DNA of 62,860 bases, filler included, from Dicyema japonicum (taxonomy: Eukaryota; Animalia; Dicyemida): NCBI GenBank assembly GCA_011109175.1. It is 9 parts of 9 records of this genome, joined end to end, with 100 filler letters (N's around TTAATTAATTAA, not from the genome) between each part and the next. Parts side by side here need not be neighbours in the genome. Positions count along the whole stretch, not along the records: positions 21,149 to 41,101 come from RDEW01000116.1; 8 more parts are not named here. One strand, written 5' to 3'. A program made the translations under genes and the position numbers. The notes under the pieces were generated by a model. That model saw nothing but the letters and a program-made list of their open reading frames with translations, was not told the DNA's origin and did no database searches. Below are positions 21,149 through 42,415 of the stretch, piece after piece (positions within the stretch are counted from its first letter, which is position 1; every line of letters starts with the position of its first letter).

Positions 21149-22081
21149 CGACGAATGTACAGTTATGTTATACATATAAGTGGCACTAGATGAGATTTGA
21201 ATCCATGATTTTTCTGAGTATTTTGCTATCATTTTTGACAGAATTTGGGTGATGGTTTGGTTGAAGCGTTCGACAATGCCTTACAAAAATGTATACGAAC
21301 AACTAAATACCTTGAGAACGAGGATTGTTCGGTCTTCCGTGAACTTGAATTACATTAAATTCATTGCTAAGTGTCCGAATGTCAAAATTTTTAAATTCTG
21401 TACCGTTGTCTGATTGTAAAATCATACAAGGTCCATGTTCATGAAATATGTTTTTTAATTGAAATGCAACCTAAATTAAATATATAATTTTTAAGAAGCA
21501 TCTTACTTCAAAGCCGGATTTGTTTTTTAATTTTCTAGTCATGGCAAACTTTGAATATACATCAATAACAGTGAGCATCCATTTGTATTCATCGTTGACA
21601 GAATAAAATCTTTTCAGATCAATAAGATCCATTTGAAATCTTTCATTTGGCTTTAACGCTATGATATGATTTTCTTGATCACTTATCTATTAAATATTAC
21701 CGAAAAACAAACTTTTAAAGGAGTAGAAAACTTACAGATTTCACATGAATTTATTACGGCCCGTATAACACTTCTTTTGACGTGGAAGTAATACTTATTG
21801 CATATATCCTCCATTTTATTCATTCCAAGATGCCCCTGGATATGGAGTGCGGAGATAAAAACTTGCATCTCTTTTTCATTATCCATGCAAATCACGAGCT
21901 TGTGATTTCCATTCGAATCTTTAAGATACATCTTCTCGTTAATCATTATTAATTTTTTCGGTTTTTGCAAGAGCCGGAATTTATTATGTTTGTTCGGAAT
22001 TGTAATCATTTCTTCTTTAAGGATTTGTTCAATTATTCGGTATTCATCCGAGCACTTTACGTAGCCTCTGTATGCAGACAT
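21149..22081 (-). CDS. Spliced HHCC-DDE integrase (Ginger/KRAB-A2-like DNA transposase), 3' end lost in gap
   Basis: Exons 22081-21713, 21686-21507, 21470-21311 and 21279-gap; introns of 26, 36 and 31 nt; spliced ORF open with H..GH..C..C, QMDLID, LQSDNGTEF and GIVERFN. Confidence 0.85.
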
Positions 22082-22339
22082 CTTTTTTGGAAAACACGCT
22101 ATTATTGGCCAGGTCACACCNAAAAAACTTAACATTTTTTAACTCTATTCATAGTAACTATCTTAGTTTCATTCTGTAATTCGATCTAAATGTTAGGAAA
22201 GACAACTAACCATTAATCTGTTATTAGACATTACATTTTTTACTTTTCCCTTTTCTTCATATGGGATTCAAATCTGTGTAGTTTCAATGAAGGATTCGTT
22301 CCATAATCTTTTAAGATTCGAACCTAAGCTGTTACTATT

Positions 22340-22830
22340 TAATTATACCTCATTCCCTATTTCAAAATCATATTTTGACTTGTGTACTCCCATTTTTTTA
22401 TTCATTCTTTTAAAATAAGATGAATTCATGTCTGGAGGAGTAAAATTAAAAATTTTATTATTCGTTTCTAAAAATAAATACATCGTAAATTTACCATTAA
22501 GTTCATCTTCTACAAACGATGCCTCATTATTTTCATCTAAATTATAAATGAAATTATAACCTGGTATTTCATTAATCACAGTGTTAATTCCAGAAATACC
22601 CCTAAACTTTTTGAATGGGGTCTCATTGATCGCCGTGTGATGTGTCGTATTATACGAAAAAGTTACTTTGTCTAAAAATTTTATTTTTTAAAGATTTACA
22701 GACTACGAATTTGCTGTAGATGTCAATGATGGTTAATATCAAATTATACCCCTCGTTAAAATCTTTATATCTTCTAACATCAATAAGATCCGCCTGGAAT
22801 CTTTCATTTGGACTTGTTGCCGTTACATGG
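22340..22830 (-). mobile_element. Integrase element remnant, same superfamily, deleted
   Basis: PNERFQADLID..LILTIIDIYSKF and SYNTTHHTAINETPF..FRG. Confidence 0.65.
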
Positions 22831-22854
22831 TAATTAGAATCGGATACCTAAGTA

Positions 22855-23350
22855 CAGTAAAACCTCTCCAATCCGCCGATTTTGGGACCGATCAAAAAAT
22901 CGGCGGATTCGAGAGGCAATTTAAATAATATTTTATAGTTGAAACATGAACTTACAATATAGATTAAATATTTCTTTTTATATACAAATGACTGAATACA
23001 TAAAATTATTTATATTCATAAAAATCAGAAATTTTATGTTTTTTATTTAATTTTCTTAACATTTCCCCAATTCGCATAATATTTTCGTGATCATCTATAT
23101 CTGCATTTACCTGAGAAGCATAAGTTTTAATAATCTCAAGAGCTCTGAAAGCTTCTAAAAGATTAACTCTTTTCTCATTTGATTCCTCTTCAATAATTGT
23201 TTCCTAAGTATAATTATTAAATAAAATCACTAACTGATTGAAATTTTTTTGACTGTAATGTATCAGCTTGTTCAGATTTTTCTAAAAATTCCATTAGCTC
23301 TTCATTTTCAGTATATCCATAATCANCATAAGAAATTATGAGAATGTAGT
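22855..23350 (-). mobile_element. pogo/Tigger-like 3' remnant
   Basis: TA|CAGTAAAACCTCT terminus with internal hairpin; minus strand VNLLEAFRALEIIK helix like the 10514 ORF. Confidence 0.55.
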
Positions 23351-23477
23351 TAATTAACTAACCGGATTATTCACTTTAATATTTCCTTGTTCCACTTAAT
23401 TTTCCCTGCATTGACATTAATGTGATTGATTATTCAATCCAATATTTCCTTGTTCCACTTGTTATTTCTAATTAGTG

Positions 23478-23960
23478 CAGGGGTGTCAAACATGCGGCCC
23501 TCGAGAAGCATAGGTGCGGCCCTCAGCGTACCTTGACAAGCATAAGTGCGGACTGAATCAATCTCTATAAAACACAAAAAATTATGTAATTATTTTTTAA
23601 ATTATTGATTAAAATTTTTAATAGTATTTGTAAATCGTGTTCGTCAATGTCACGTGCTTCTTCTGGAATTAAGAAAAGGTGTTTGAAAGATGAACGGAGA
23701 GTGTTTCAAGATAAATGGGAACTTCTCTATTTTTGTACAACGGTTGATGGAAAAATACACTGTTTAAGACTCACTTGTTCAAAGATATTTCATTATCAAG
23801 AAATACTGTTGCCGAACACATTAATGAAATGGCTTTGAATTTGAAACACCAATTAAAGTCTGAATTGTTAAAGTTCGAATATTTTTCAATTGCAATCGAT
23901 GAAACAGTCGACGTTGTTGGAATTGCACAATTAGCAATCTTTGTTAGAGCCATGGTTTTT
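23478..23960 (+). mobile_element. hAT transposon left part (SPIN/GTF2IRD2-like)
   Basis: TIR CAGGGGTGTCAAAC; RVFQDKW, ISLSRNTVA and FSIAIDET..QLAIFVR motifs. Confidence 0.8.
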
Positions 23961-23977
23961 CATTATAATAAATTTTT

Positions 23978-26900
23978 TATATTCCGCCTCCCGGCTCCTG
24001 TGCCAAAGAATTTACAGTGGATTTGTCCGCACTTGGCAAGGTGGAAAACTTGCTGGTTTCGGGGGATTTTAATGCCAAACACCCCTCATGGTATTGGAAA
24101 CAACCTCCAGATAAGAGGGGGAACCTAATAAATTCTCATTTGGAAAATCTGTGTGTTTCAAACGACCCAAGGAAGAACACTCGAACCCCTTACAACGAGA
24201 AAAATTCACTCACTTTACCCGATATTACTATTTGTTCATCACGACTGGCACCTCTTGTCCATTGGTCCGTCAATTTTGACTTGGGGAGCGATCACAATCC
24301 TATCAAAATCAATTGCTCCCCGTCAACCCGTTCAAAACATGCGGTATTTCACGATTACGATAATGCCTACTGGACAGGATATAAAAAATATGTTGATTCA
24401 TCCCTATGGAATTTTCATCCGCAGAATTTCAACTCCCTCGATATGGCAGTCAATTACTTTAACAAAGTTATCCTCAAGGGGAGAGATCTATTTGTCAGGA
24501 AAGGAGTCCTGAAACTCACGAAAAGAAAATACGACGCTAAAACAGTTAAACTAATAAAAGAAAGGAATTTCCTCAAAAGCAGTACACATTTGACAAAAGT
24601 TACAACGAGAAGGATTCGGGCACTGAACGTGGAGATCGCAGAAAGTGCGAGACGTTTACAAAAAAGAAAATTGGACACGATTTCCCGAGGGATGAACAAA
24701 AAGGGCTCACTTTCGAAAATGTGGAAGATGTTGCGTAACATTAAAAACGCCGACAGTACAAACGAGGATGACCATAATCTCCAACTAGATCTAAACACTT
24801 TTATAAAACATTGCGTGAAGATAAGTCACAAGTCTTATAAAAAATCGGAACCCCCCTCAATTATTAGAGGGAAACCGAAAAGGGAGCCTCCATTATCGTA
24901 CTTCCTACCTCGAGATGTCGCTGTAGAAATTTCCCGACTAAAGAATACACGCTCCTGCGGACCAGACGGAATCCCAGTGATCATGCTCAAAAAATTGGGC
25001 GATGCAGCTGTCTCTGCACTTACGAGTATTTACAATTACTCGTGCAACTTCAATACCATTCCAACATTATGGGAACTGTCGACTATTCACCCAATCCTGA
25101 AGCCTGGAAAACCGAAGGAGGATCCTGGATCATACAGGCCAGTGTCCCTTTTATGTGTCCAGACACGAATTCTAGAGAGAATGGTGATGACATTGATTCG
25201 TCCCCTCCTCCCAGAAGTCAGTTTTCAACATGGATTCAAAGAGGGGCGATCAACTGTCACACACCTAAATGCTTTAATGAAATTTATATCAGATGGTCTA
25301 AACAAAAAACCTAAACAGGAAAAATCCATTGTCTGCTCGATCGACATAAAGAAGGCTTTCGATTCGGTGCCAAGGAAAATACTCACACAAAAGATCTATT
25401 CCTCAAATATTGATACAAATCTAAAACTATGGCTTGGGAATTTCCTGAGCGGTCGTCGGGGAAGGGCTTGTTATGGAAACAGATCTTCCATATCGAGACT
25501 ATTACCAAATGGGGTCCCTCAGGGTTCTCCTTTATCTCCACTCCTATTCAATCTCATGATGAACGACCTACCACAGCCAGAAGAGGACAACGATCTGTTA
25601 TTATTATATGCAGACGATATTATCGTCGCATCAAGGGATGTGAGCATAATAGAAGCAACGCGTAGAATACAAGATAAACTTAACAATCTGAGTACATGGC
25701 TATATAAAAACGAACTGGAGGCAAGTCCGGAAAAATCTATTTTGACTTTGTTCACGAAAAACAGAAGGCTTGGGAAAGTTTCAATTGAAGCAAAGTTGGA
25801 CGGGAAAATTATACCTCAGAACAAAACCCAGAAGATTATAGGAGTTACCTTCGACACGTTTCTAACTTTTTCAACCCACGTCGAAAATGTAGTTATGGCG
25901 GGTACAAGAAAGGTTAACTTCCTGAAGGCTTTCCTGGGGAACGCAGGAGATTGCAAAAGCCTATATGGTCTAAACAACATATATAATCAATACGTGGAAC
26001 CTACGATNGGGAAAATTATACCTCAGAACAAAACCCAGAAGATTCTAGGAGTTACATTCGACACCTTTCTAACCTTTTCAACCCATGTCGAAAACGTAGT
26101 TATGGCGGGTACAAGAGAGGTTAACTTCCTGAAGGCTTTCCTGGGGTACGCAGGAGAATGCAAAAGCATATATGGTCTAAACCAGTGGTTCTCAACGTGG
26201 GCGATATCGCCCAAATGGGGCGATGAATTTTATGAGATGGGGCGATGGATTTTTAATTTGGGGCGTTCGATTTGGAATGAAAATTTTAAATATATTCTAT
26301 TAAATTTTTACTAATTCTTAGATAAAAAACAGTTTATTATAAAACCAAATTTAACTAAGGTTACGCTATTTAATTAAGATTTTCACTCTCTGTTGGAGAT
26401 CTCTCTCCTCCTTTTAGGTATTTAAAATTATTTTTAAACTTCAAACCTTTTTAAACGTCAAAGATAATGCAATTTTCTCAAAACATTTATTACGCTGAAA
26501 TCGGAAATAAATTCCAGTTTTCATGATATAATAAATATTCAAATTCCACGATGGATAATCAATCCATTTATTGTTGATATAGTTGAGTGTCCAATTCACT
26601 TGCGAAAAGAATTAATTCTTTTAAAAAATGACGAAGAACATGAATTCAGACACGAAAATTGTGAAATTTCAAAATTTTGGCAAAATAAAAATATAGAAGA
26701 AAATTTTCCTAGTCTTTGGAATGAAATAACCCCGATGTTATTATGTTTTCCTTCTTATTTAGTCGAAAGAGGATTTAGCCAATTAAAACATATTCTAACT
26801 ATGGAGAGAAACACGCTAAATATATGTGATCGTGGAGATATTCGACTCAATCTGAAAAATCTTATTTAGTCGAAAGAGGATTTAGCCAATTAAAACGTAT

Positions 26901-27581
26901 TCTAACTATGGAGAGAAACACGCTAAATATATGTGATCGTGGAGATATTCGACTCAATCTGAAAAATATAAAAGCAGATTGTGAAGCTCTATCAAATAAA
27001 CGTCAGTTCCAAGGGGCACATTAATTAAATTAATTGTCGTAACCTTTTGTTTCTTTTCACTTCTTTCGGAAAAAAATTAACTATTAATAGAAATTTTATA
27101 AAAAAAAATTTTACATTAATAAATCACAACGATAATTTTGGGGCGATGAAATATTTGGTTGGGCGATGAAAGTTCAAAAGGGGCGACGAGTAAAAAAGGT
27201 TGAGAACCCCTGGTCTAAACAACATATATAATCAATACGTGGAACCTACGATCGGCTATGCGTGTGGAATCTGGGGAACAAACTTAACTGCAAACAATCA
27301 ATCAAAAATCGACAAAATTCGGTTGAAAGCGGCAAACCTGCTAAATACATTTTCCGATAAAGAGATTATCCCAAAAGCCTGGAACAACATCATAAAGTCA
27401 TCTGCAATCTATCTACGAGAGGTTCGTCCTAGGAATCCCCGTCCGTACCGAAAATGCGTTGGGACAACGTCGGAACATCGGGAAAGGGTGCGCGAACTGC
27501 TGAGGGAGGCTGGGATCACCTGAATTCTTGTTTCTTTTGGCTATGACGGTGGTTTTCTGGTTCAATAAATAAATAAAAATG
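23978..27581 (+). mobile_element. ingi/Vingi-like LINE (APE-RT), 5'-truncated, interrupted by a hAT insertion
   Basis: Open from YIPP through GDFNAKH, DLGSDH, YRPVSLL, IDIKKAFDSV, PQGSPLSP and YADD; resumes at 27221 and ends EAGIT* (27523) with an (AATA)n tail; N join at 26007 may fuse two copies. Confidence 0.9.
26183..27212 (+). mobile_element. Non-autonomous hAT (Buster/Charlie-like)
   Basis: TIRs CAGTGGTTCTCAAC / GTTGAGAACCCCTG; 8-bp TSD GTCTAAAC; GGGCGA subterminal repeats; FPSYLVERGFS remnant. Confidence 0.92.
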
Positions 27582-27589
27582 TTCGTAAG

Positions 27590-27844
27590 ACGAAGCCGTA
27601 GGTCTCCTCTCTCAGCAACGTCTAAGCGGTTTCGACTTTGGTAACGAGTTGAGATACAACGCTAAAGCTTCTCTCAACCAAGTAAGAAGTAGGAAAAGCG
27701 ATAAACAATAATCTAATATCTTAATATAATCTAATATTTATAATTAATTTTCATCGCCCCCAGTAAACGATTTAGTCATAAACGCCCCCTTAAAATTTTG
27801 TATCGCCCTCAAGGGGGCGATATTGCCCACTTGGGGAAACCCTG
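27590..27844 (-). mobile_element. hAT (Buster-like) deleted remnant
   Basis: IAFPTSYLVERSFS..RGDLRLRLT; terminus CAGGG at 27844 with GGGCGA repeats. Confidence 0.6.
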
Positions 27845-28128
27845 ATTTAAACGAAAAACAGATACTTTGTTTATTATTAGCACTACGCGATGTCATCGGT
27901 CATGACCAGCCTGTGCAGCACCCAGGACAGCTTTCTCCATTTCGTTCTATTCCGACCTGCGTCTTCGAATATCCTACAAAACTAAAACTAGGTTTAATTT
28001 TGATTCGATAAAATTTGACCATTGTGATAAAAATGTGGTTTCCGCCGTGGTCACTTTAATTATTGAAGCTATTTAAATAAAAATTATTTACGTAGTTAAA
28101 TAGCTAAAAAATCATTCCGTTAAAAAAT

Positions 28129-29036
28129 ATGGACCTCACCTATGTCTATTATTTTAACACTGTTATGGTTTCATTAACAATAATAATTTCGTTCTCTTTG
28201 GCCATTTCGTTCTTTTATTTCTACGGAAATTCTTTCGATTTTGTATTTTCATTTTTATTTTGTTTTTTTTCAATTTTTTTAATCTTCGATTTCTTAACAA
28301 ATGAACCAGACTTTGGAGGTCTTTTAAATTTGTCATTTATTAGATATTCTTGGAGTAACGACTCTTCGTTATCTCTCAGCATTGTCTACTTGGTTATGGC
28401 TTTCATCCATATTTACTCTGATATTTATTGGCAGTTACTGGATCCGTTACGTAAGAAGTCGATCTTTTATACTATTAACAACTGGAAAAATTGTGACTAC
28501 CCTCACAATGATCATCATTTCAACGTTGCTTTTGGTTTTACCACGTTTTTGGACGTTACCTAAGAGAGTATTCAATTTCTTAACATTGACAGTTTGAAAG
28601 TATTAACCAGAAATATTTATATTATGCACTTCCAATAATTGAGGTGCCATTAATGTTTTTGATACTATTGATTGTTGGAATCGTTGGAAGCGTTGTTACT
28701 ATAGTGAACAGTGGTCCGTTACAGCTTTTTATTGAGATTGAAAACAAACGAGTCAGAGAGGTAGTGACGTATAAGTCTGATCGAATCATTTTGGTCTTGA
28801 TTTGGCTGACAATTATGCTTATTCCACGAAAACTCGTTGATTTTATTTTTAACTACCAATCCGAGTTTAATATTCAAGGACAATTTGGTAAGATTTTGAA
28901 CAAAAAGGATTTCTTTCAAACGGTTTTTTATGGATTTTATTTTTTAACTAATCTGATCGTCATTTTTAGCTATAGAAAGCTTTCCAATTTTGTTTTTTTT
29001 GGAAAAATCCGCACATTTTTCGTTTCGTTGATTTAA
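28129..29036 (+). pseudogene. Divergent 7TM rhodopsin-like (peptide-receptor-like) gene with two frameshifts
   Basis: Hydrophobic segments in three successive frames; IRY..VLPRFW (TM3-4), YYALPIIEVPL (TM5), IWL..LIP (TM6); about 300 codons in total. Confidence 0.5.
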
Positions 29037-29411
29037 CACTTCTTTATTAACTATTTTATTAAGAATTTCCATTTTAATTTAAAACGACTTAATTTAAGAA
29101 CGTCAACCAGTGAAGAATATCGGTTCCATCTTTCCTTTAGATCCGAACCAGCATCCCGATCTATAAACAATAGATTCTGGAGAGCTGATTTGAAAATTCG
29201 TTATTTCCCAATAAGAATATTTACATTTTTTTACCGGCATCAGTTTCATCGACGATTAAAAAAAATTTTTCGTTAATTAACAATTCGATTGTCCAATTAA
29301 AACGTCTCTCGGCCAAAATATTGGCATTGCTTTTACATTTTGATACTGAAGATAACTAGAATTCAATAGTATTAGAAAAAATTTATAAAAACAGGATTTC
29401 GTAGTTTATAT

Positions 29412-30304
29412 CAGCGGTTCTCAACCTGGGGTCGATTCGACCCCCTGGGGTCGAAAATCAACCCAGATCGACCGTAGGGGGTCGAAAATAAATTTCATAA
29501 TTTTAATTTTTTTCATTTTTAAATTAAGTTAGTTTATTTTTAAAGTGGTAAACCTTAAGTGGTAACCTTATTCTCCGATTCCAAGATATTCTTGAATTAG
29601 AAATTAATAAATTTCATAATTTTAATTTTTTTCCTTTTTAAATTAAGTTAGTTTATTTTTAAAGTGGTAAACTTTAAGTGGTAACCTGATTCTCCGATTC
29701 CAAGATATTCTTAAATTAGAAATTCCATCTTGGATGATTAATCCTTTTTTGTCAAAGCCAGAAGAAGAAAAAGATAATATTCAAGAGGAATTAATAATGT
29801 TAAAATTCAATCCATAATTAAAACTATATTATAATGATTCACAAACGCCAGTTATTTTTTGGCAAAATATGAAAGTAAAAGAGACTTATCCAAAATTGTG
29901 GAACGAAATAGCACAATTGCTCCTCTATTTTCCGACATCATACTGTGTTGAATGTGGATTTAGCATTCTACATCGAATAGTAAATAAAGAACGAAACAGA
30001 TTGGATGTGTCCATTAGAGAAGATTTTCGTTTGAAAATAACACAAATAGAGCCAGATATCAAATCTTTGGTTAAAAAACATCAGTCACAGGGGTCCCATT
30101 GGTATTTAATTGTTTTTATTATAGATTTATACTCAGATACTAACTTAACATCGAGTTTTTTTGTTTGATTATTAACAATGAATTCATTTTAGATGATTAG
30201 TTAACTAATTTTACTTATAGTTGTCTGTTTTATATAAAAAAGTTTTAAGGGGGTCGAAAAAAAAATCAAGGGGTCGACGAGTAAAAAAAGGTTGAGAACC
30301 CCTG
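29412..30304 (+). mobile_element. Non-autonomous hAT (Buster/Charlie-like)
   Basis: TIRs CAGCGGTTCTCAAC / GTTGAGAACCCCTG; 8-bp TSD GTTTATAT; GGGGTCGA subterminal repeats; FPTSYCVECGFS remnant. Confidence 0.92.
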
Positions 30305-31032
30305 GTTTATATAATGGAGCATTTGCTCAAACAAATTGAGCGAAAAAGCACTTGTACCAACAGTAGTAGGAAAAAACGTTCAAATCCTCTATTTAGCTTC
30401 GTTCATATGTGAATTTACAGAATGTTACACAAATAACGCATATATATCGAAATTTTCTCAATGAGGCTCCGTATTTCCACATGTTTTTCGTAATTTCCGG
30501 GATTCAGTCTCCAATCTTTTTAATTGGATTCCGTGAGTAAGGTTTCTGATGATTGTAAGTCTCAATGGCCAAAGGAATAACTTCTATGCTCTTTTCAACG
30601 TACTTCTCAAGTTTGATTTTTTAGTACGTTTATAAGATGCTTCGAGTTTAAAAAAATGTCACTTCAGGTTCATGTTCCAATATGTCTATATGTATTTAGC
30701 GTATCTGACCAGTCATCTTCGCTTTTTTAATGGAAAAATAATCGCTCCATTCGTTCTTTTTAAGTCGTCAGTGAAGATTCAACATGTTCCTGATGGAAGT
30801 AAAATCACGTTGTTTTCAGATTTGTTTCAGAGCGTCTTGACAAGAAAAACACCTAGTTTCAGTTTTCATTGAAAGAGAATCGTAGACAAATTGATCCGCA
30901 ACGACATTGCGCAGTCGAAGTTGACAACCGAGACCAACTTATACTCCAATTCTGACATCTTTGTCGTTCAGTTAAGTATCAGTTCCCGTGTATGGTTACA
31001 ATCGAGCTATGCAAGAATTGCTGAATGAATGA

Positions 31033-32043
31033 ATGATTATTTATTTACAAGAAAATTACCTTGGAGTATTGGAAAACATGGATAGCAGCGTCCTGAAAAA
31101 TGATACGATGACCTCAATCTCGGATGCAGTCGAGAAGAGGATTAATAGCCTGGCAGATTCGAAACTGAATTCTGCAAATTTTTTCAAGGCTGTCAATGAG
31201 CATGCGTTGTCCTTGTATAACTACTACATCGAGCTCATTGATATCGAACCATGCGAATTTGAGAATATTGACAAGAATGTGCGCAAGGTCTTGATAGGCC
31301 ACCAAATACACATGAAACCTGGAAACAAAGATAGACTTTATCTTCCAAGAGACCGACTAGGAAGAGGATTGGTCTCTGTGGTGCATAAAAGCGAGCGAAT
31401 GCTTCTCGAATTTCTCAAGGACATTGAGATGAAGGCGTCCTATTGTTTGAGGAAAGAGGGAATCCTGAAGGCCGTCAGATCAAAGAAAACACACATGGCC
31501 ACTATCAAGGAATTCCTATGCAGAAAGTACCAATTGGCAACTCCGGAAAGCCTCAAACTGAACGTTTTGAAGGATGTGCAAGGAAAGTACTTAATTGAGC
31601 AGATACGAAGAAAGCCCCTTCACTCGATTTTGTTTAATTGCTATGATGATTTGGACGTAGATCTCAAGGAATCGTCCTGGTAGTTATCGCATGGGAACAA
31701 CTCTCCAAGGTCGGAGGGAATGCTGTGTATGGTTCAGGACCGCAACTTATTCTTTGACAGCGGAGGTAGTAGTTGCAACCATTGCAACGCCGCCAAAAAG
31801 ACGGTGGATCATCTTGCTACAAGATGTGGCAGAATGTTGAACAGCGATTACCTGCGTCGCCACAATGAGGTGGTAAGGTGCATTCACTTGCACATCTGCC
31901 GACAATATGGGATAAAACAGTCTAGGAAGTTGAAGACCCACTCCGTTCAGTCGACTGTCTCTAATGAGGTGGTCGAAATACGGGTGGACACGACGATCAA
32001 GACGGATACTAAAGTCAATAATAATAAACCGGACATTTTTGTC
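31033..32043 (+). mobile_element. R2/R4-like (RLE-type) non-LTR retrotransposon, 3' half
   Basis: RLYLPRDRLGRGL; CNHC..TVDHLATRC CCHC finger; YLRRHNEVV; KPDIFV cut by gap; one in-frame stop at 31681. Confidence 0.85.
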
Positions 32044-32093
32044 NNNNNNNNNNNNNNNNNNNNNNNNNNNNNNNNNNNNNNNNNNNNNNNNNN

Positions 32094-32218
32094 CCAAGGC
32101 CACCATTACCTCACGTGAAATACAGACTGCAGTTCGGTTGATTCTTCCTGGTGAATTGGCAAAACATGCAATTACAGAAGGTGCAAAGGCAGTTACTAAG
32201 TACACGAATACAAAATAA
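32094..32218 (+). CDS. H2B: Histone H2B, 3' part (5' in gap)
   Basis: [40 protein letters not shown]. Confidence 0.9.
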
Positions 32219-32544
32219 CACTTTAAAAATAAATTTTCTATTGATTTGCTCCTAAAATAACTATTTCACCATCTAGCTAGTAATTTAACCTATAATCTTG
32301 AAAAAATTCATCAGCAAAGGCAGTGACTAAGTACACGAATACAAAATAACACTTTAAATTAAATGTTCTATTCATTTGCTCCCAAACTAACTATTTCACA
32401 ATCTAGCTAGTAATTTAACCTATAATCTTGAAAAAATTCATCAATTAAAACAATAATTACAATTATTATTGGTGTTGATAAAATATTAAAAAAGATATTT
32501 ATTTTTTTTAATTTAATAACGGTTAGTGATTCGACTTAAAAAAA

Positions 32545-32753
32545 TTTCGGAATGATACTTTTTTTGCATTACTCGAAATTTTTTCGGAATGATACTTTTC
32601 TGGTATATTAAATTTTTTTCATCCGCTAAAGATTTTTGTTTATATACTGAAAAAGTATCATTCCGAAAAAAATTTTCAAAAAAATTTCGGAATGATACTT
32701 TTTTTGCATTACTCAAAATTTTTTTCGGAAGGGGGTTTTTTTAACTATATAAA
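32545..32753. promoter_or_regulatory. H3 upstream region: four TTTCGGAATGATACTTTT motifs, one half motif and a TATA box
   Basis: Motifs at 32545(+), 32582(+), 32651(-), 32685(+); TTTCGGAA at 32723; TATATAAA at 32746. Confidence 0.75.
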
Positions 32754-32778
32754 CATTTTCATTTCAGGAAATACAAAA

Positions 32779-33189
32779 ATGGCAAGAACTAAACAAACAG
32801 CTCGAAAATCTACTGGGGCAAAAGTACCAAGGAAACAATTGTCTGCAAAATCTGCTCGCAAGTCTGTTTCACAACTTGGAGGAGTAAAGAAACCTCATCG
32901 ATTCCGACCTGGAGTCGTTGCAATGCGAGAAATTAGACGATACCAGAAGAGCACTGATCTGTTACTTCGAAAACTTCCATTCCAAAGACTCGTGAGAGAA
33001 ACCGCTCAGTTTATCAAAACCGATTTGCGTTTTCAATCGTCAGCGATTGTCGCTCTCCAAGAAGCGGCAGAGAGTTACCTTGTTGGAATTTTTGAAGACA
33101 GTAACTTGTGTGCAATTCACGGAAAAAGAGTAACCATTATGCCAAACGATATGCATTTATCGAGAAGAATTCGAGGTGAAAAAACATAA
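32779..33189 (+). CDS. H3: Histone H3 (divergent), copy 1
   Basis: [13 protein letters not shown]..; 136 codons; the ORF track's upstream extension is not used. Confidence 0.97.
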
Positions 33190-33658
33190 CTTGTGCGTTT
33201 TAATAAATAAAAAAATGATTTATTGTTTGGATAACTTATTTGAGATAATTTTAATGTTTTTGCATTTGTAGAAAATGTAATGTTGAACTTTTTTTAAATA
33301 AATAGATGATGTTCGTTGTGTATTTTAGAGAAAAATGTAATTCATTTTGTTTGATATGGATTTGGTTGATAATTCATATATACAAACGAAAACCTACAAC
33401 ATTTTTTGGTTTATTTTGCCTAATAGGTAAATAAATTCTATTGGACGAAAGAAATATTTCGTCAACGGAAAGTTTTGTGCCTAAAATAAAAAAATATTTT
33501 GATATTTCATCTAAACTTACTTCTAAACGTTTATTGCGTTTGAAATTATTCGAAACTCGTTAAACGAATATCAAAACCGAACTTAACCGGTAGATCGATT
33601 GTATTTCGAGAACAATATTACAAAATAACAGTGTTTTATTCAAATATATTATTTAAAG

Positions 33659-34018
33659 TTAAGTAGTTGGTTTAGGAGTTTCTGCAGTCTTCCGAATCAT
33701 AAATCCGCCAGATGAAATAATAGCTTTCTGAGTTAATTCTTTTAATTCGTCGTCATTTCCAATTGCAACGACGATGTGACGTGGTTTAATTCTTCTTTTT
33801 CCACATTTTACTGCTGTATTTCCAGCGAGTTCAAGCATTTCAGCCACAGCATATTCCAAAACTGCGCACATGTATACTGCTGCAGGAATTCCTACTCGCA
33901 TTCGGGTTTCGTGGCGAAGACACCGGTGAATGCGTCCAACTGGAAACTGCAACCCTGCCCGGATCGATTTGCTTTTAGCCTTTGACCGTACTTTTCCTCC
34001 TTTTCCTCTTGAAGACAT
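33659..34018 (-). CDS. H2A: Histone H2A (divergent, short), copy 1
   Basis: [13 protein letters not shown] and ELAGN motifs; 119 aa. Confidence 0.96.
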
Positions 34019-34150
34019 TATATTATCATCCGCAAACGATTTTTGTTTATATACTGAAAAAGTATCATTCCGAAAAAAATTTTCAAAAAAATTTCGGAAT
34101 GATACTTTTTTGCATAGGTTCAAAATTATGTTTTTTATCGAATTTTTGTA
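34019..34150. promoter_or_regulatory. Bidirectional H2A/H4 promoter with an inverted motif pair
   Basis: 132-bp spacer; AAAAGTATCATTCCGAAA at 34058 and TTTCGGAATGATACTTTT at 34092; minus-strand TATATAAA ahead of H2A. Confidence 0.75.
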
Positions 34151-34459
34151 ATGTCAGGACGTGGTAAAGGTGGAAAAGGAGGAAAGAGTGGTGCAAAACG
34201 ATTTCGAAAGATATTAATCGACAATATACAAGGAATTACTAAGCCAGCAATTAGAAGACTATGTCGAAGAGGAGGTGTTCGAAGAATTTCTGGCAAAATT
34301 TACGAGGAGACACGTTCTGTCCTTAAAATTTTTATTGAGCAAACTGTTCGTGATTGTATTTCTTACACCGAACATGCAAAAAGAAAAACTGTTATTGCAA
34401 TGGATGTTGTTAATGCCTTGAAACGTCAAGGTCGGACAATTTACGGATTTGGTGGATAA
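34151..34459 (+). CDS. H4: Histone H4 (divergent), copy 1
   Basis: [27 protein letters not shown]; 102 aa. Confidence 0.97.
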
Positions 34460-34464
34460 TTCAT

Positions 34465-34865
34465 ACTTAACTTTGATAATAAAATATATTGCTATTCTTT
34501 ACAAAATTACAATAGAAAAATAGGCAATCTCATAAATTTAATAACGAAAGAGAGTCATATATTGCGTATTGTCAAAGATTCGTGTGAGAAATGTTGCATA
34601 CATAACCTTGATAATAAAATATATTGCTCTTCTTTACAAATTAACAATAGAAATATAGGCAATCTCATAAATTTAATAACGAAAGAGGATCATATATTGC
34701 GTTTTGTCAAAGATTCGGGTTAGAAATGTTGTCATACATAACTTTGATAATAAAAATATTGCTATTCTTTACAAATTAACAATAGAAAATAGGAAATCTC
34801 ATAAATTTAATAACGAAAGAGGGTCATATATTGCGTTTCGTCAAAGAATCGGGTGAGAAATGTTT
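34465..34865 (+). repeat. Three imperfect ~135-bp repeats starting at the H4 3' UTR
   Basis: AAC(T/C)TTGATAATAAA at 34469, 34604 and 34740; present in every unit. Confidence 0.85.
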
Positions 34866-35003
34866 TGGAAAAGACAAGAAGTATTTTATATATTATTGTA
34901 TATTTTTACAGAAAATTAGAGTAATATCGTTTAAAGAATTTATAAAAATTAAATTTATTCATTTTTATTAAGAAATATTTAATTTGCTTATATTTCAAAA
35001 AAA

Positions 35004-35072
35004 TTTCGGAATGATACTTTTTTTGCATTACTCAAAATTTTTTTCGGAATGATACTTTTCTGGTATATTAAA
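35004..35072 (+). promoter_or_regulatory. H2B promoter: two direct motif copies plus a TATA-like box
   Basis: Motifs at 35004 and 35042; TATATTAAA 8 nt after GATAC. Confidence 0.75.
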
Positions 35073-35104
35073 CATTTTCCTTAAAGGACTGACGAATTTT
35101 GATA

Positions 35105-35470
35105 ATGGCACCTAAAGTTAGTACAAAAGGACAAAAAAGAGCTGCTATTAAAACCAAAAATGTTTCTGTTGCAACAAAGAAAAAGAAGAAAAAGAAAACT
35201 TTTTCAATATATCTAATGAAAATTTTAAAGACGGTGCATAATCAACTTGGAATGTCAAAGAAGGCTATGATGGCTATGGACAGTTTCACATTCGATGTTT
35301 ATGACAAAATAAAAACCGAGGCTTCAAATCTGGTATATCAGAATTCCAAGGCCACCATTACCTCACGTGAAATACAGACTGCAGTTCGGTTGATTCTTCC
35401 TGGTGAATTGGCAAAACATGCAATTACAGAAGGTGCAAAGGCAGTTACTAAGTACACGAATACAAAATAA
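35105..35470 (+). CDS. H2B: Histone H2B (divergent), copy 1
   Basis: [28 protein letters not shown]; 121 aa. Confidence 0.96.
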
Positions 35471-35695
35471 CACTTTAAAAATAAATTTTCTATTGATTTG
35501 CTCCTAAAATAACTATTTCACCATCTAGCTAGTAATTTAACCTATAATCTTGAAAAAATTCATCAGCAAAGGCAGTGACTAAGTACACGAATACAAAATA
35601 ACACTTTAAATTAAATGTTCTATTCATTTGCTCCCAAACTAACTATTTCACAATCTAGCTAGTAATTTAACCTATAATCTTGAAAAAATTCATCA
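35437..35695 (+). repeat. Tandem ~130-bp duplication of the H2B last codons and 3' UTR
   Basis: GCAAAGGCAGT(T/G)ACTAAGTACACGAATACAAAATAA..TTCATCA occurs twice; the same pair recurs after the other two H2B copies. Confidence 0.85.
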
Positions 35696-36030
35696 ATTAA
35701 AACAATAATTACAATTATTATTGGTGTTGATAAAATATTAAAAAAGATATTTATTTTTTTTAATTTAATAACGGTTAGTGATTCGACTTAAAAAAATTTC
35801 GGAATGATACTTTTTTTGCATTACTCGAAATTTTTTCGGAATGATACTTTTCTGGTATATTAAATTTTTTTCATCCGCTAAAGATTTTTGTTTATATACT
35901 GAAAAAGTATCATTCCGAAAAAAATTTTCAAAAAAATTTCGGAATGATACTTTTTTTGCATTACTCAAAATTTTTTTCGGAAGGGGGTTTTTTTAACTAT
36001 ATAAACATTTTCATTTCAGGAAATACAAAA

Positions 36031-36441
36031 ATGGCAAGAACTAAACAAACAGCTCGAAAATCTACTGGGGCAAAAGTACCAAGGAAACAATTGTCTGCAA
36101 AATCTGCTCGCAAGTCTGTTTCACAACTTGGAGGAGTAAAGAAACCTCATCGATTCCGACCTGGAGTCGTTGCAATGCGAGAAATTAGACGATACCAGAA
36201 GAGCACTGATCTGTTACTTCGAAAACTTCCATTCCAAAGACTCGTGAGAGAAACCGCTCAGTTTATCAAAACCGATTTGCGTTTTCAATCGTCAGCGATT
36301 GTCGCTCTCCAAGAAGCGGCAGAGAGTTACCTTGTTGGAATTTTTGAAGACAGTAACTTGTGTGCAATTCACGGAAAAAGAGTAACCATTATGCCAAACG
36401 ATATGCATTTATCGAGAAGAATTCGAGGTGAAAAAACATAA
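36031..36441 (+). CDS. H3: Histone H3, copy 2
   Basis: Protein identical to copy 1. Confidence 0.97.
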
Positions 36442-36910
36442 CTTGTGCGTTTTAATAAATAAAAAAATGATTTATTGTTTGGATAACTTATTTGAGATAA
36501 TTTTAATGTTTTTGCATTTGTAGAAAATGTAATGTTGAACTTTTTTTAAATAAATAGATGATGTTCGTTGTGTATTTTAGAGAAAAATGTAATTCATTTT
36601 GTTTGATATGGATTTGGTTGATAATTCATATATACAAACGAAAACCTACAACATTTTTTGGTTTATTTTGCCTAATAGGTAAATAAATTCTATTGGACGA
36701 AAGAAATATTTCGTCAACGGAAAGTTTTGTGCCTAAAATAAAAAAATATTTTGATATTTCATCTAAACTTACTTCTAAACGTTTATTGCGTTTGAAATTA
36801 TTCGAAACTCGTTAAACGAATATCAAAACCGAACTTAACCGGTAGATCGATTGTATTTCGAGAACAATATTACAAAATAACAGTGTTTTATTCAAATATA
36901 TTATTTAAAG

Positions 36911-37270
36911 TTAAGTAGTTGGTTTAGGAGTTTCTGCAGTCTTCCGAATCATAAATCCGCCAGATGAAATAATAGCTTTCTGAGTTAATTCTTTTAATTC
37001 GTCGTCATTTCCAATTGCAACGACGATGTGACGTGGTTTAATTCTTCTTTTTCCACATTTTACTGCTGTATTTCCAGCGAGTTCAAGCATTTCAGCCACA
37101 GCATATTCCAAAACTGCGCACATGTATACTGCTGCAGGAATTCCTACTCGCATTCGGGTTTCGTGGCGAAGACACCGGTGAATGCGTCCAACTGGAAACT
37201 GCAACCCTGCCCGGATCGATTTGCTTTTAGCCTTTGACCGTACTTTTCCTCCTTTTCCTCTTGAAGACAT
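36911..37270 (-). CDS. H2A: Histone H2A, copy 2
   Basis: Protein identical to copy 1. Confidence 0.96.
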
Positions 37271-37403
37271 TATATTATGATCCGCTAACGAATTTTGTTT
37301 ATATACTGAAAAAGTATCATTCCGAAAAAAATTTTCAAAAAAATTTCGGAATGATACTTTTTTTGCATAGGTTCAAAATTATGTTTTTTAGGGAATTTTT
37401 GTA

Positions 37404-37712
37404 ATGTCAGGACGTGGTAAAGGTGGAAAAGGAGGAAAGAGTGGTGCAAAACGATTTCGAAAGATATTAATCGACAATATACAAGGAATTACTAAGCCAG
37501 CAATTAGAAGACTATGTCGAAGAGGAGGTGTTCGAAGAATTTCTGGCAAAATTTACGAGGAGACACGTTCTGTCCTTAAAATGTTTATTGAGCAAACTGT
37601 TCGTGATTGTATTTCTTACACCGAACATGCAAAAAGAAAAACTGTTATTGCAATGGATGTTGTTAATGCCTTGAAACGTCAAGGTCGGACAATTTACGGA
37701 TTTGGTGGATAA
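37404..37712 (+). CDS. H4: Histone H4, copy 2 (LKM instead of LKI)
   Basis: One Ile>Met difference from copies 1 and 3. Confidence 0.96.
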
Positions 37713-38358
37713 TTCATACTTAACTTTGATAATAAAATATATTGCTATTCTTTACAAAATTACAATAGAAAAATAGGCAATCTCATAAATTTAATAACGA
37801 AAGAGAGTCATATATTGCGTATTGTCAAAGATTCGTGTGAGAAATGTTGCATACATAACCTTGATAATAAAATATATTGCTCTTCTTTACAAATTAACAA
37901 TAGAAATATAGGCAATCTCATAAATTTAATAACGAAAGAGGATCATATATTGCGTTTTGTCAAAGATTCGGGTTAGAAATGTTGTCATACATAACTTTGA
38001 TAATAAAAATATTGCTATTCTTTACAAATTAACAATAGAAAAAGAGGAAATCTCATAAATTTAATAACGAAAGAGGGTCATATATTGCGTTTCGTCAAAG
38101 AATCGGGTGAGAAATGTTTTGGAAAAGACAAGAAGTATTTTATATATTATTGTATATTTTTACAGAAAATTAGAGTAATATCGTTTAAAGAATTTATAAA
38201 AATTAAATTTATTCATTTTTATTAAGAAATATTTAATTTGCTTATATTTCAAAAAAATTTCGGAATGATACTTTTTTTGCATTACTCAAAATTTTTTTCG
38301 GAATGATACTTTTCTGGTATATTAAACATTTTCCTTAAAGGACTGACGAATTTTGATA

Positions 38359-38723
38359 ATGGCACCTAAAGTTAGTACAAAAGGACAAAAAAGAGCTGCT
38401 ATTAAAACCAAAAATGTTTCTGTTGCAACAAGAAAAAGAAGAAAAAGAAAACTTTTTCAATATATCTAATGAAAATTTTAAAGACGGTGCATAATCAACT
38501 TGGAATGTCAAAGAAGGCTATGATGGCTATGGACAGTTTCACATTCGATGTTTATGACAAAATAAAAACCGAGGCTTCAAATCTGGTATATCAGAATTCC
38601 AAGGCCACCATTACCTCACGTGAAATACAGACTGCAGTTCGGTTGATTCTTCCTGGTGAATTGGCAAAACATGCAATTACAGAAGGTGCAAAGGCAGTTA
38701 CTAAGTACACGAATACAAAATAA
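38359..38723 (+). pseudogene. H2B: Histone H2B, copy 2, 1-nt deletion (pseudogene or sequencing error)
   Basis: 365 nt versus 366; one A is missing at GCAACA(A)AG in the lysine run. Confidence 0.8.
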
Positions 38724-39182
38724 CACTTTAAAAATAAATTTTCTATTGATTTGCTCCTAAAATAACTATTTCACCATCTAGCTAGTAATTTAACCTATAA
38801 TCTTGAAAAAATTCATCAGCAAAGGCAGTGACTAAGTACACGAATACAAAATAACACTTTAAATTAAATGTTCTATTCATTTGCTCCCAAACTAACTATT
38901 TCACAATCTAGCTAGTAATTTAACCTATAATCTTGAAAAAATTCATCAATTAAAACAATAATTACAATTATTATTGGTGTTGATAAAATATTAAAAAAGA
39001 TATTTATTTTTTTTAATTTAATAACGGTTAGTGATTCGACTTAAAAAAATTTCGGAACGATACTTTTTTTGCATTACTCGAAATTTTTTTCGGAATGATA
39101 CTTTTTTTGCATTACTCTCAAAATTTTTTCGGAAGGGGGTTTTTTTAACTATATAAACATTTTCATTTCAGGAAATACAAAA

Positions 39183-39593
39183 ATGGCAAGAACTAAACAA
39201 ACAGCTCGAAAATCTACTGGGGCAAAAGTACCAAGGAAACAATTGTCTGCAAAATCTGCTCGCAAGTCTGTTTCACAACTTGGAGGAGTAAAGAAACCTC
39301 ATCGATTCCGACCTGGAGTCGTTGCAATGCGAGAAATTAGACGATACCAGAAGAGCACTGATCTGTTACTTCGAAAACTTCCATTCCAAAGACTCGTGAG
39401 AGAAACCGCTCAGTTTATCAAAACCGATTTGCGTTTTCAATCGTCAGCGATTGTCGCTCTCCAAGAAGCGGCAGAGAGTTACCTTGTTGGAATTTTTGAA
39501 GACAGTAACTTGTGTGCAATTCACGGAAAAAGAGTAACCATTATGCCAAACGATATGCATTTATCGAGAAGAATTCGAGGTGAAAAAACATAA
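39183..39593 (+). CDS. H3: Histone H3, copy 3
   Basis: Protein identical to copy 1. Confidence 0.97.
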
Positions 39594-40062
39594 CTTGTGC
39601 GTTTTAATAAATAAAAAAATGATTTATTGTTTGGATAACTTATTTGAGATAATTTTAATGTTTTTGCATTTGTAGAAAATGTAATGTTGAACTTTTTTTA
39701 AATAAATAGATGATGTTCGTTGTGTATTTTAGAGAAAAATGTAATTCATTTTGTTTGATATGGATTTGGTTGATAATTCATATATACAAACGAAAACCTA
39801 CAACATTTTTTGGTTTATTTTGCCTAATAGGTAAATAAATTCTATTGGACGAAAGAAATATTTCGTCAACGGAAAGTTTTGTGCCTAAAATAAAAAAATA
39901 TTTTGATATTTCATCTAAACTTACTTCTAAACGTTTATTGCGTTTGAAATTATTCGAAACTCGTTAAACGAATATCAAAACCGAACTTAACCGGTAGATC
40001 GATTGTATTTCGAGAACAATATTACAAAATAACAGTGTTTTATTCAAATATATTATTTAAAG

Positions 40063-40422
40063 TTAAGTAGTTGGTTTAGGAGTTTCTGCAGTCTTCCGAA
40101 TCATAAATCCGCCAGATGAAATAATAGCTTTCTGAGTTAATTCTTTTAATTCGTCGTCATTTCCAATTGCAACGACGATGTGACGTGGTTTAATTCTTCT
40201 TTTTCCACATTTTACTGCTGTATTTCCAGCGAGTTCAAGCATTTCAGCCACAGCATATTCCAAAACTGCGCACATGTATACTGCTGCAGGAATTCCTACT
40301 CGCATTCGGGTTTCGTGGCGAAGACACCGGTGAATGCGTCCAACTGGAAACTGCAACCCTGCCCGGATCGATTTGCTTTTAGCCTTTGACCGTACTTTTC
40401 CTCCTTTTCCTCTTGAAGACAT
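40063..40422 (-). CDS. H2A: Histone H2A, copy 3
   Basis: Protein identical to copy 1. Confidence 0.96.
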
Positions 40423-40553
40423 TATATTATGATCCGCAACGATTTTTGTTTATATACTGAAAAAGTATCATTCCGAAAAAAATTTTCAAAAAAATTTCGG
40501 AATGATACTTTTTTTGCATAGGTTCAAAATTATGTTTTTAGGGAATTTTTGTA

Positions 40554-40862
40554 ATGTCAGGACGTGGTAAAGGTGGAAAAGGAGGAAAGAGTGGTGCAAA
40601 ACGATTTCGAAAGATATTAATCGACAATATACAAGGAATTACTAAGCCAGCAATTAGAAGACTATGTCGAAGAGGAGGTGTTCGAAGAATTTCTGGCAAA
40701 ATTTACGAGGAGACACGTTCTGTCCTTAAAATTTTTATTGAGCAAACTGTTCGTGATTGTATTTCTTACACCGAACATGCAAAAAGAAAAACTGTTATTG
40801 CAATGGATGTTGTTAATGCCTTGAAACGTCAAGGTCGGACAATTTACGGATTTGGTGGATAA
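40554..40862 (+). CDS. H4: Histone H4, copy 3
   Basis: Protein identical to copy 1. Confidence 0.97.
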
Positions 40863-42415
40863 TTCATACTTAACTTTGATAATAAAATATATTGCTATTC
40901 TTTACAAAATTACAATAGAAAAATAGGCAATCTCATAAATTTAATAACGAAAGAGAGTCATATATTGCGTATTGTCAAAGATTCGTGTGAGAAATGTTGC
41001 ATACATAACCTTGATAATAAAATATATTGCTCTTCTTTACAAATTAACAATAGAAATATAGGCAATCTCATAAATTTAATAACGAAAGAGGATCATATAT
41101 TNNNNNNNNNNNNNNNNNNNNNNNNNNNNNNNNNNNNNNNNNNNNTTAATTAATTAANNNNNNNNNNNNNNNNNNNNNNNNNNNNNNNNNNNNNNNNNNN
41201 NATGATTTTAGAGAATTATAGCGGATCAATCGCCTTCTACAAAAAAATTAAAAAAAGTTGTTTCAGATATCCCAATCACTTTTCTAGCTCTCTTGAATTC
41301 CTTAAATGTGGATTGAATAAGCGAGTAAAGGTCGAATATTGATTAATGCCTGTCTATGTTAAGACCCTCAGAAAACATTGTTATGTGCAGATATGTTCCA
41401 CGTGTATAATGGGCTCATTCCTCATCCGTACATTAAATAAAGGGATTTTTACATATGTGTAAACCACATTGCCCAAAAAGGAGTATTTATTTGAAATTGA
41501 GAAAAAATCATATATTAATCATAAACTGTGTCCCAGTGGAAGCATTCCGATCTACTATGAATAATCGTGTCCACATCGTAGAACTCCCATTAGGATTCCT
41601 CTCAAGATACAGCAAGGTCACTTTCTGAGAGCAGTTTAGTGGCTGGTGGGAAACTCAAGAAGAGTTGGGAACTTTTGAAGACTAGAGTCACCTAATCAGT
41701 TGGTTTAACATTTCTTTCTTGGTAGTTTCTTGGTCTAATAATAATGTGATCATCAGCATACCCCCGACGTAATCATTACTCATTGGGGAAGTTAGAAAAA
41801 AATTTAATTCACTTACAAAAATCTAAAAGATTAGTTAAGTTGGAGAAATTCTAAAAATAATTTTGCTTCTGTTTCAAGTAAACAATAAAGTTTGAAATAA
41901 GCGACGAAATAGAGTCATCTCAAATGTATCCACCCCCTCTCCTCCAGGAAGTCAAACGGATCAAATTTGAAAATCAATGCGTTCCAGTTTATAAAGTAAA
42001 ACAGTGTTTATGGTTTCGCACATGCCAAGTTTGCGACTATTAGCCTTCTCCATCCATTTGTCGTCTTGCTTGCCTACTGATTTCGTCAAGATCATCTGCA
42101 TCCATAATTCGGCCCTCGATCACAGCATAATCATCTCCAAAACGCTTATCTGTGGAACTAAAAAATTTATGAAATCATTTTGATAACAGCGTCACCACAT
42201 TATTGGTTTACTTAAAAATATTTGGAGATAAAATAATATTTAATAAAACCAGACGAACAAATTCAAAGATAAATAGAAACAGAAAAAATACAACAAAGAC
42301 AAGAACCAAAACGCCATTCAAAAGCGCTATTTTAGTATGTCACATGGGCGGCGCGTAACGCATGGGCAGCCTGTTACATTTTTTCGACCTTGAAAAGGTC
42401 TTTTGACTATCCGAC

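Follow-up and report, generated by a model that had tools for sequence, protein, structure and literature searches.

The dicyemid Dicyema japonicum has in its genome (assembly GCA_011109175.1) a tandem array of core-histone genes. We analysed a stretch of 62,860 nucleotides (nt) of this genome, made up of nine parts joined with filler and called the window here, in which the array lies within the part taken from RDEW01000116.1 (positions 21,149 to 41,101). The genes are arranged head to tail in the order H3(+), H2A(-), H4(+), H2B(+), with a period of 3,252 bp. The promoters of all four core-histone classes, in this array and in related arrays alike, carry a common element, which occurs in the window as the 18-bp word TTTCGGAATGATACTTTT. 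We propose that this word is probably the core of a compact, lineage-specific upstream promoter element common to the four core-histone genes. A putative sequence-specific transcription factor would recognise a TTYCGGAA(T) core, binding just upstream of the basal machinery, and its binding would switch on all four genes of the quartet together. Concerted evolution may homogenise the element, in addition to selection acting on the shorter core; promoter modules, and likewise array units, would exchange sequence by unequal and ectopic recombination or by gene conversion. The initial annotation of this DNA had put forward a candidate lineage-specific element of the four histone promoters, and this description agrees with a constant orientation, a placement 56-63 nt before the ATG and a core found only in histone modules in the 118 kb scanned.

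The word occupies fixed positions in the histone promoters

With up to three mismatches allowed, TTTCGGAATGATACTTTT has 20 matches in the window, 19 of them exact and one with a single mismatch (39050, T>C). Dinucleotide-preserving shuffles, which give the chance expectation, contain 0.20 matches on average and at most 1. Every match falls between 32545 and 40512, inside the array, and there is no match in the 11.4 kb transposon-rich left flank (21149-32182). There are eight copies in each of units 1 and 2, and four in the part of unit 3 that is visible: the H3 promoter of this unit is shorter by ~101 bp, and the H2B promoter falls past the end of the piece.

The copies form direct pairs that are 37 bp (32545/32582) or 38 bp (35004/35042 and 39050/39088) apart, as well as an inverted pair, 34058(-)/34092(+), within the 132-bp divergent spacer between H2A and H4. 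The inverted arrangement follows from the presence of one gene-facing copy per gene in a divergent spacer. The proximal copy or half-site is always directed towards its gene and starts 56 nt (H3), 57 nt (H2A), 59 nt (H4) or 63 nt (H2B) before the ATG. In both H2A and H2B, 8 nt separate the end of ...GATAC from the TATA box, which corresponds to 4 nt from the end of the 18-mer. The H3 half-site TTTCGGAAGGGGG is placed 9-10 nt from its TATA box TATATAAAC. The confinement of the word to the array, the spacing of the direct pairs, the inverted pair, the 8 nt to TATA (counted from the ...GATAC end) and the similar placement of the H3 half-site had all been described in the initial annotation, and all were recovered here.

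In unit 1, four complete copies precede H3. The distal copy (32545..32562, +) and the next one (32582..32599, +), which is followed by an H2B-type TATA box (CTGGTATATTAAA), lie within a duplicate of the H2B promoter that unit 3 lacks. A third copy (32651..32668, -) is followed by an H2A-type TATA box and leader, with no gene behind it, and belongs to a duplicate of the H2A/H4 spacer. The fourth (32685..32702, +) is followed by TTTGCATTACTC and serves as the distal H3 module, upstream of the proximal half-site (32723..32735, +; the others start at 35975 and 39127). The arms of the inverted pair are the proximal H2A copy (34058..34075, -) and the proximal H4 copy (34092..34109, +), and H2B is preceded by a distal (35004..35021, +) and a proximal copy (35042..35059, +). 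In unit 2, the region upstream of H3 (35797..35987) contains copies at 35797(+), 35834(+), 35903(-) and 35937(+) together with the half-site at 35975; the H2A/H4 inverted pair spans 37310..37361 (37310(-), 37344(+)) and the H2B direct pair 38258..38313 (38258 and 38296, +). Unit 3 has a simple form of the H3 promoter (39050..39139, +), consisting of the mismatched copy at 39050, the copy at 39088 and the half-site at 39127, followed by an inverted pair at 40461..40512 (40461(-), 40495(+)).

This geometry bears on what kind of element the word may be. An element with an effect on chromatin or on the entire locus, by nucleating a histone-locus compartment or by keeping promoters free of nucleosomes, would be compatible with many repeats in an array that is multi-copy (read depth in the hundreds) and with the A- and T-tracts that flank the word. 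There is also a precedent in Drosophila, where GA repeats in the H3-H4 promoter are reported to be bound by CLAMP (PMC5588930). The strict TATA-adjacent position and the constant orientation nevertheless fit a proximal activator better. Moreover, the histone 3' stem-loop (RF00032) was not found in 19,953 bases with Rfam at E-values up to 1; without it, a processing body of the U7 type has no evident need. We therefore regard a purely locus-wide role as improbable. The missing stem-loop also indicates that the genes of the array are not classical replication-dependent histone genes. In line with this, AATAAA follows the H3 stop codon, and AATAAA signals lie downstream of array genes (33190-33230, 34460-34480, 35471-35500).

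It seems to us very improbable that the word is a piece of some mobile element or satellite and plays no part at histone genes, or a hairpin RNA or DNA element built from the inverted pair. The flank of the array is indeed rich in transposons, and the inverted pairs do match microRNA-like Rfam families, yet these matches are weak (27 bits against gathering thresholds of at least 60; E-values 0.2-0.5), lie far under threshold and are explained by the inverted arrangement of the pairs. No copies were found in the transposon-rich flank, nor anywhere else in the 118 kb scanned, and those in the array are mostly direct and keep a set position and direction with respect to the genes.

Promoter modules and their recombination

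The repeated module exceeds 18 bp and comprises an A-run, TTTCGGAATGATAC and a T-run. It continues in one of two ways. In H3 and H2B, it is followed by TTTGCATTACTC(G)AAAATTTT, a 20-bp spacer that contains TTTGCAT, and then by a second copy, resulting in 38-bp tandem modules. In H2A and H2B, four bases lead to the TATA box, TATATAAAC or TATATTAAAC. The H4 copy is followed by TTGCATAGG, and a clear TATA box was not seen after it. In unit 1, the TATA boxes are located at 32746..32754 for H3 (TATATAAAC, +, 33 nt before the ATG), at 34045..34053 for H2A (TATATAAAC, -, 35 nt) and at 35064..35073 for H2B (TATATTAAAC, +, 41 nt). With these distances, and if transcription starts where the TATA boxes would place it, the leaders would be only a few nucleotides long. 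TTTCAG stands directly before the ATG of H3, and likewise before that of H2B in the second quartet described below.

Directly after four of the eight copies of a full unit is TTTTGCAT, which agrees with the octamer ATTTGCAT at 7/8 positions. The array contains no exact octamer; the single one in the window is at 21885, beyond the array. In some of the related promoters described below, the octamer-like piece is missing or changed. The statement of the initial annotation that the motif does not resemble the octamer thus holds for the 18-mer and fails for the module, in which this near-match follows half of the copies.

In units 1 and 2, the region upstream of H3 includes two segments copied from other promoters. 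Positions 32538-32612 are a 76-bp, 97% identical copy of the H2B promoter, and positions 32621-32709 are an 89-bp, 96-98% identical copy of the H2A/H4 spacer and the start of the H2A leader. Unit 3 lacks this mosaic of ~101 bp, and its H3 promoter consists of two modules and the half-site. Since the pasted segments are restricted to units 1 and 2, the promoter modules evidently recombine with each other. Recombinant duplicates thus account for four of a full unit's eight copies, and the independent sites in the four promoters amount to six and one half-site. The count of eight per unit in the initial annotation is correct for units 1 and 2, with the reservation that half of these are duplicates and that the visible unit 3 holds four.

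These duplications raise the question whether the word has a function of its own. It may instead be the best-preserved stretch of one promoter cassette, copied to each of the four genes, whose uniformity is maintained by gene conversion and unequal crossing-over. Function would then reside in the TATA box, the A/T tracts or the TTTGCAT element. The similarity between promoters outruns 18 bp, extending over a module of ~38-45 bp and, between H2A and H2B, through the TATA box. This extent, the pasted 76-bp and 89-bp segments and an identity of 99.6-99.7% across units (99.7% between units 1 and 2) are what such copying would produce. We consider a cassette of this kind possible and less likely than a promoter element, for reasons that come from the related arrays.

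Conservation in related arrays

The closest public relatives of the array histones are proteins annotated as Octopus sinensis, encoded on unplaced contigs of GCA_006345805.1 (loci L002-L004 and L006-L009). The unplaced contigs concerned include VCDQ01011424, VCDQ01010301 and VCDQ01009797. In RefSeq they bear names such as 'histone H2A-beta, sperm-like' and 'late histone H2B.L4-like'. For H2A, the relative reaches 98% identity, and canonical H2As come next at only ~60%. Coding differences between the array and these contigs affect ~5% of positions, with synonymous divergence of ~0.19 and a ratio of nonsynonymous to synonymous divergence (dN/dS) of 0.01-0.06, which indicates strong purifying selection on the histone proteins. 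The Dicyema japonicum genome was obtained from specimens collected from O. sinensis, and contigs covered by octopus reads were removed (PMC6736024). The 'octopus' histone contigs, and also a quartet filed under an ant (see below), are likely to be dicyemid parasite or laboratory contamination. In practical terms, the nearest relatives of these genes stand in the databases as proteins of octopus and ant, probably through parasite contamination.

In the related lineage, the element is present at the same positions in all four promoters without being identical. The H3 promoter contains TTTCGGAATGATAC (distal) and ATTCGGAATAATGT (proximal), the H2A promoter TTTCGGAATGCCAT, the H4 promoter TTTCGGAATGGTCC (distal) and TTTGGCAATGATAC (proximal), and the H2B promoter TTTTGGAATTATAC (distal) and TTTCGGAATGATAC (proximal). 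One to five changes per 18-mer are tolerated, as would be expected if a cassette were simply copied. The constrained part is TTTCGGAAT(G), or ~9-14 nt (TTTCGGAAT(G)ATAC), and not the 18 nt given in the initial annotation; the GATAC half varies. Because the relatives have seven variants and the array one, the 18/18 identity of the array copies appears to reflect homogenisation by concerted evolution.

The specificity of the core was assessed in 118,429 bases, comprising the window piece and six related loci. Of the 47 exact TTTCGGAAT 9-mers, 40 are situated no more than 400 bp upstream of a histone start and the other seven in recognisable orphan promoter modules, and none was found outside histone promoter modules in these 118,429 bases. 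A rough estimate from base composition gives one or two chance matches in a sequence of this length.

Conservation across the H2B promoter was compared with one related lineage. Similarity to this lineage begins at the distal copy. Upstream of it, identity is 35%; it rises to 89% in the distal 18-mer, falls to 70% in the spacer, reaches 100% in the proximal 18-mer (18/18) and drops to 60% in the TATA box and leader. When the H2B promoter and the H2A/H4 spacer are pooled, the 14-nt core is identical at 49/56 positions, compared with 127/183 elsewhere (one-sided Fisher p=0.004). The element of the initial annotation is thus conserved in a related lineage, at the same promoter positions and beyond its surroundings. 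A duplicated cassette accounts poorly for these observations, as no part of the H2B promoter is better conserved than the motif copies, which exceed both the spacer and the TATA box and leader, and as the TTTCGGAAT core is kept in four gene classes and both lineages with different adjoining bases.

A second histone quartet with a related word

The second comparison was with a paralogous family, represented by a 2,255-bp contig (DF945167.1; L001) in the assembly GCA_000949405.1 of the ant Vollenhovia emeryi, which encodes H2A(-), H2B(+), H4(+) and H3(+). Compared with the array, identity is 92% for H4 (residues 18-102) and 75% for H2B. The promoters of this family, referred to here as family B, contain six copies resembling TGTGCTTCCGGAAAAA, compared with an expectation of 0.07. 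An inverted pair lies between H2A and H2B, and direct pairs spaced 35 bp and 51 bp apart precede H4 and H3, respectively; the copies are located at 550-720, 1270-1340 and 1915-2000 of the contig. On the opposite strand, the word reads as a T-run followed by CCGGAAGCACAA, and TTYCGGAA is common to the words of family B and of the array. In the H4 promoter, TATCGATT adjoins each copy.

The H2A and H2B promoters of family B constitute a 61-nt inverted repeat that is 93% complementary, which is again consistent with the duplication of a cassette. On the other hand, the second family retains the layout with a related core. A layout that is kept while the word changes is hard to fit by neutral copying alone, and suggests that the two promoter words may have family-specific readers.

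A loose end in sequencing run X4 matches the H2B gene of family B at 25/25 bases, and family B is therefore present in the same sample as the array. This leads us to consider, tentatively and as a rather unlikely scenario, that one organism has at least two quartets (A with TTTCGGAATGATAC, B with TGTGCTTCCGGAAAAA), each with a private word and a co-evolved pair of factor and site, providing alternative histone sets for life-cycle stages or cell types. Such an arrangement would resemble that of sea urchins, with their early and late histones, here in an animal of ~30 cells with a simple promoter code.

The putative reader of the word

The word contains segments that recall known binding sites. 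The initial annotation had noted a GATA-like and a TEAD-like half. The former does not hold, since TGATAC departs from WGATAR (C at the position of R) and the relatives have GCCAT, GGTCC or AATGT in its place. A GATA-type reader is unsupported because this half is not conserved. The TEAD/MCAT-like GGAATG is found in all copies of the window and in four of the seven site classes of the relatives; the other classes have GGAATA, GGAATT or GCAATG, and family B has GGAAGC. We also compared the word by eye with consensus sequences for E2F (TTTSSCGC), heat-shock (TTCnnGAA), STAT (TTCN3GAA) and ZNF143 sites, none of which fits all copies in both families. A scan of metagenomes did not find a direct motif pair. 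In a literature search, no published description of the motif or of dicyemid histone promoters was found. A 2025 survey of molluscan histones reports histone expansions in cephalopods (PMC12210499), and promoter motifs are not treated in the passages of that survey cited here.

Several points weigh against a promoter element with its own reader. Leaders of a few nucleotides are unusual, and the start sites could lie elsewhere. As the similarity between promoters extends beyond the motif, the motif is not cleanly separable from a duplicated cassette. The excess conservation of the core is modest (87% versus 69%), and gene conversion among copies could yield part of it. The specificity scan covers 118 kb and not a whole genome. 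Finally, the public runs are DNA and cover genes and spacers alike, so that our view of the expression of these genes is based on sequence. With these points taken into account, we still favour a lineage-specific promoter element.

Genes, flanks and source of the array

The array extends over 32183..41101 and comprises ~2.7 units, the last of which is truncated by the end of the piece. In unit 1, H3 is located at 32779..33189 (+), H2A at 33659..34018 (-), H4 at 34151..34459 (+) and H2B at 35105..35470 (+). The further copies are at 36031-36441 and 39183-39593 (H3), 36911-37270 and 40063-40422 (H2A), 37404-37712 and 40554-40862 (H4) and 38359-38723 (H2B, unit 2). In unit 2, H2B is frameshifted through the loss of 1 nt from an A-run (near 38430), which makes it a dead copy unless the assembly has a homopolymer error here. 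All four histones are strongly divergent, with an H4 that is ~80% identical to canonical H4, and an exact-protein look-up found no identical protein on record for the H2A or H3 of the array. The last codons of H2B and its 3' flank are included in a 130-bp tandem duplication (35435-35695, also 32183-32443 and 38688-38948), and the spacer between H4 and H2B is filled by three 135-bp tandem repeats (34461-34864, also 37714-38118).

To the left of the array, decayed mobile elements occupy 21683-32118, joined to the array across a scaffold gap of 50 Ns (32044-32093). They include an integrase zinc-finger fragment (21683-22135), the endonuclease and reverse transcriptase of a long interspersed nuclear element (24017-26314, with an internal 207-bp duplication) and open reading frames that resemble hAT transposases by eye (23775-24128 and 29869-30168, the latter without a Pfam match). 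Homology matches of the reverse transcriptase are only ~35% identical.

The published Dicyema japonicum genome was sequenced with four Nextera mate-pair libraries and has 36.7% GC and 48.9% repeats (PMC6736024). Among public runs, the array is best covered by four 2019 runs of one sample, whose loose ends bear Nextera junction adaptors. This read signature agrees with that of the Dicyema japonicum project, and an octopus source of the array, considered at first, was rejected. A 2015 run (X5) contains low-depth pieces that are at least 99% identical to the window. The tandem order is borne out by DNA reads from public runs, which contain a joint that goes back 3252 bp. Loose ends at 34150 and 34185 (runs X1 and X2) lead to additional H4-like genes with another upstream sequence (...GGTTTCAGGAAAAC before the ATG) and another N-terminal coding continuation, and read depth is highest over the 5' coding parts of H4 and H2B. 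These H4-like reads and depth peaks point to further histone families in the sample. A third histone family is found on contigs P0242 and P0107.

Comparison with known systems

A close parallel to the proposed element is found in budding yeast, where a histone-only upstream activating sequence is bound by Spt10 and occurs at all core-histone gene pairs, in paired copies within short divergent spacers. Like this sequence, the array word is short, paired and present in divergent spacers, and in the 118 kb scanned its core was seen in histone promoter modules only. The two sequences are unrelated, however, and the yeast genes form divergent pairs instead of a tandem quartet and have a known factor. 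To our knowledge, a factor of the Spt10 type is not expected in animals. In fission yeast, the AACCCT box is bound by the GATA-type factor Ams2, and in Chlamydomonas and Volvox a common histone-promoter element lies just upstream of TATA. Both resemble the array word in that one lineage-specific word serves all core-histone classes, and the algal element also shares its fixed short distance to TATA, although the sequences differ in the algae and in fission yeast.

In animals, subtype-specific elements are known, such as the H2B octamer ATTTGCAT bound by Oct-1 and the H4 Site II (GGTCC) bound by HiNF-P. These are promoter-proximal, as is the array word, and lie tens of bp upstream of TATA, but each belongs to one histone class, whereas the array word is common to all four. 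Among individual binding sites, those of TEAD (GGAATG) and class-I ETS factors (CCGGAAG) come to mind. The array core contains CGGAATG, and family B has CCGGAAGC, which is near the class-I ETS consensus. Neither consensus holds in all copies.

In the Drosophila tandem histone array, the GA repeat bound by CLAMP is reported to be a cis element of the H3-H4 promoter that is needed for locus-wide activation (PMC5588930). Like the array word, it is a repeated cis element of a tandem histone array. It is a simple repeat in one spacer and is linked to a histone locus body and stem-loop processing, whereas the array word is complex, present in all promoters and accompanied by no stem-loop.

One lineage-specific word for the four core histones is known in yeasts and green algae, and animals usually have class-specific elements and a histone locus body instead. 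Here, an animal array of fast-evolving and near-leaderless histone genes, without a 3' stem-loop, appears to employ one word for four genes, and a sister gene family has a different word in the same layout. Such a system would be well suited to asking how a binding site and the factor that reads it change in step, and how recombination in a tandem array homogenises regulatory DNA.

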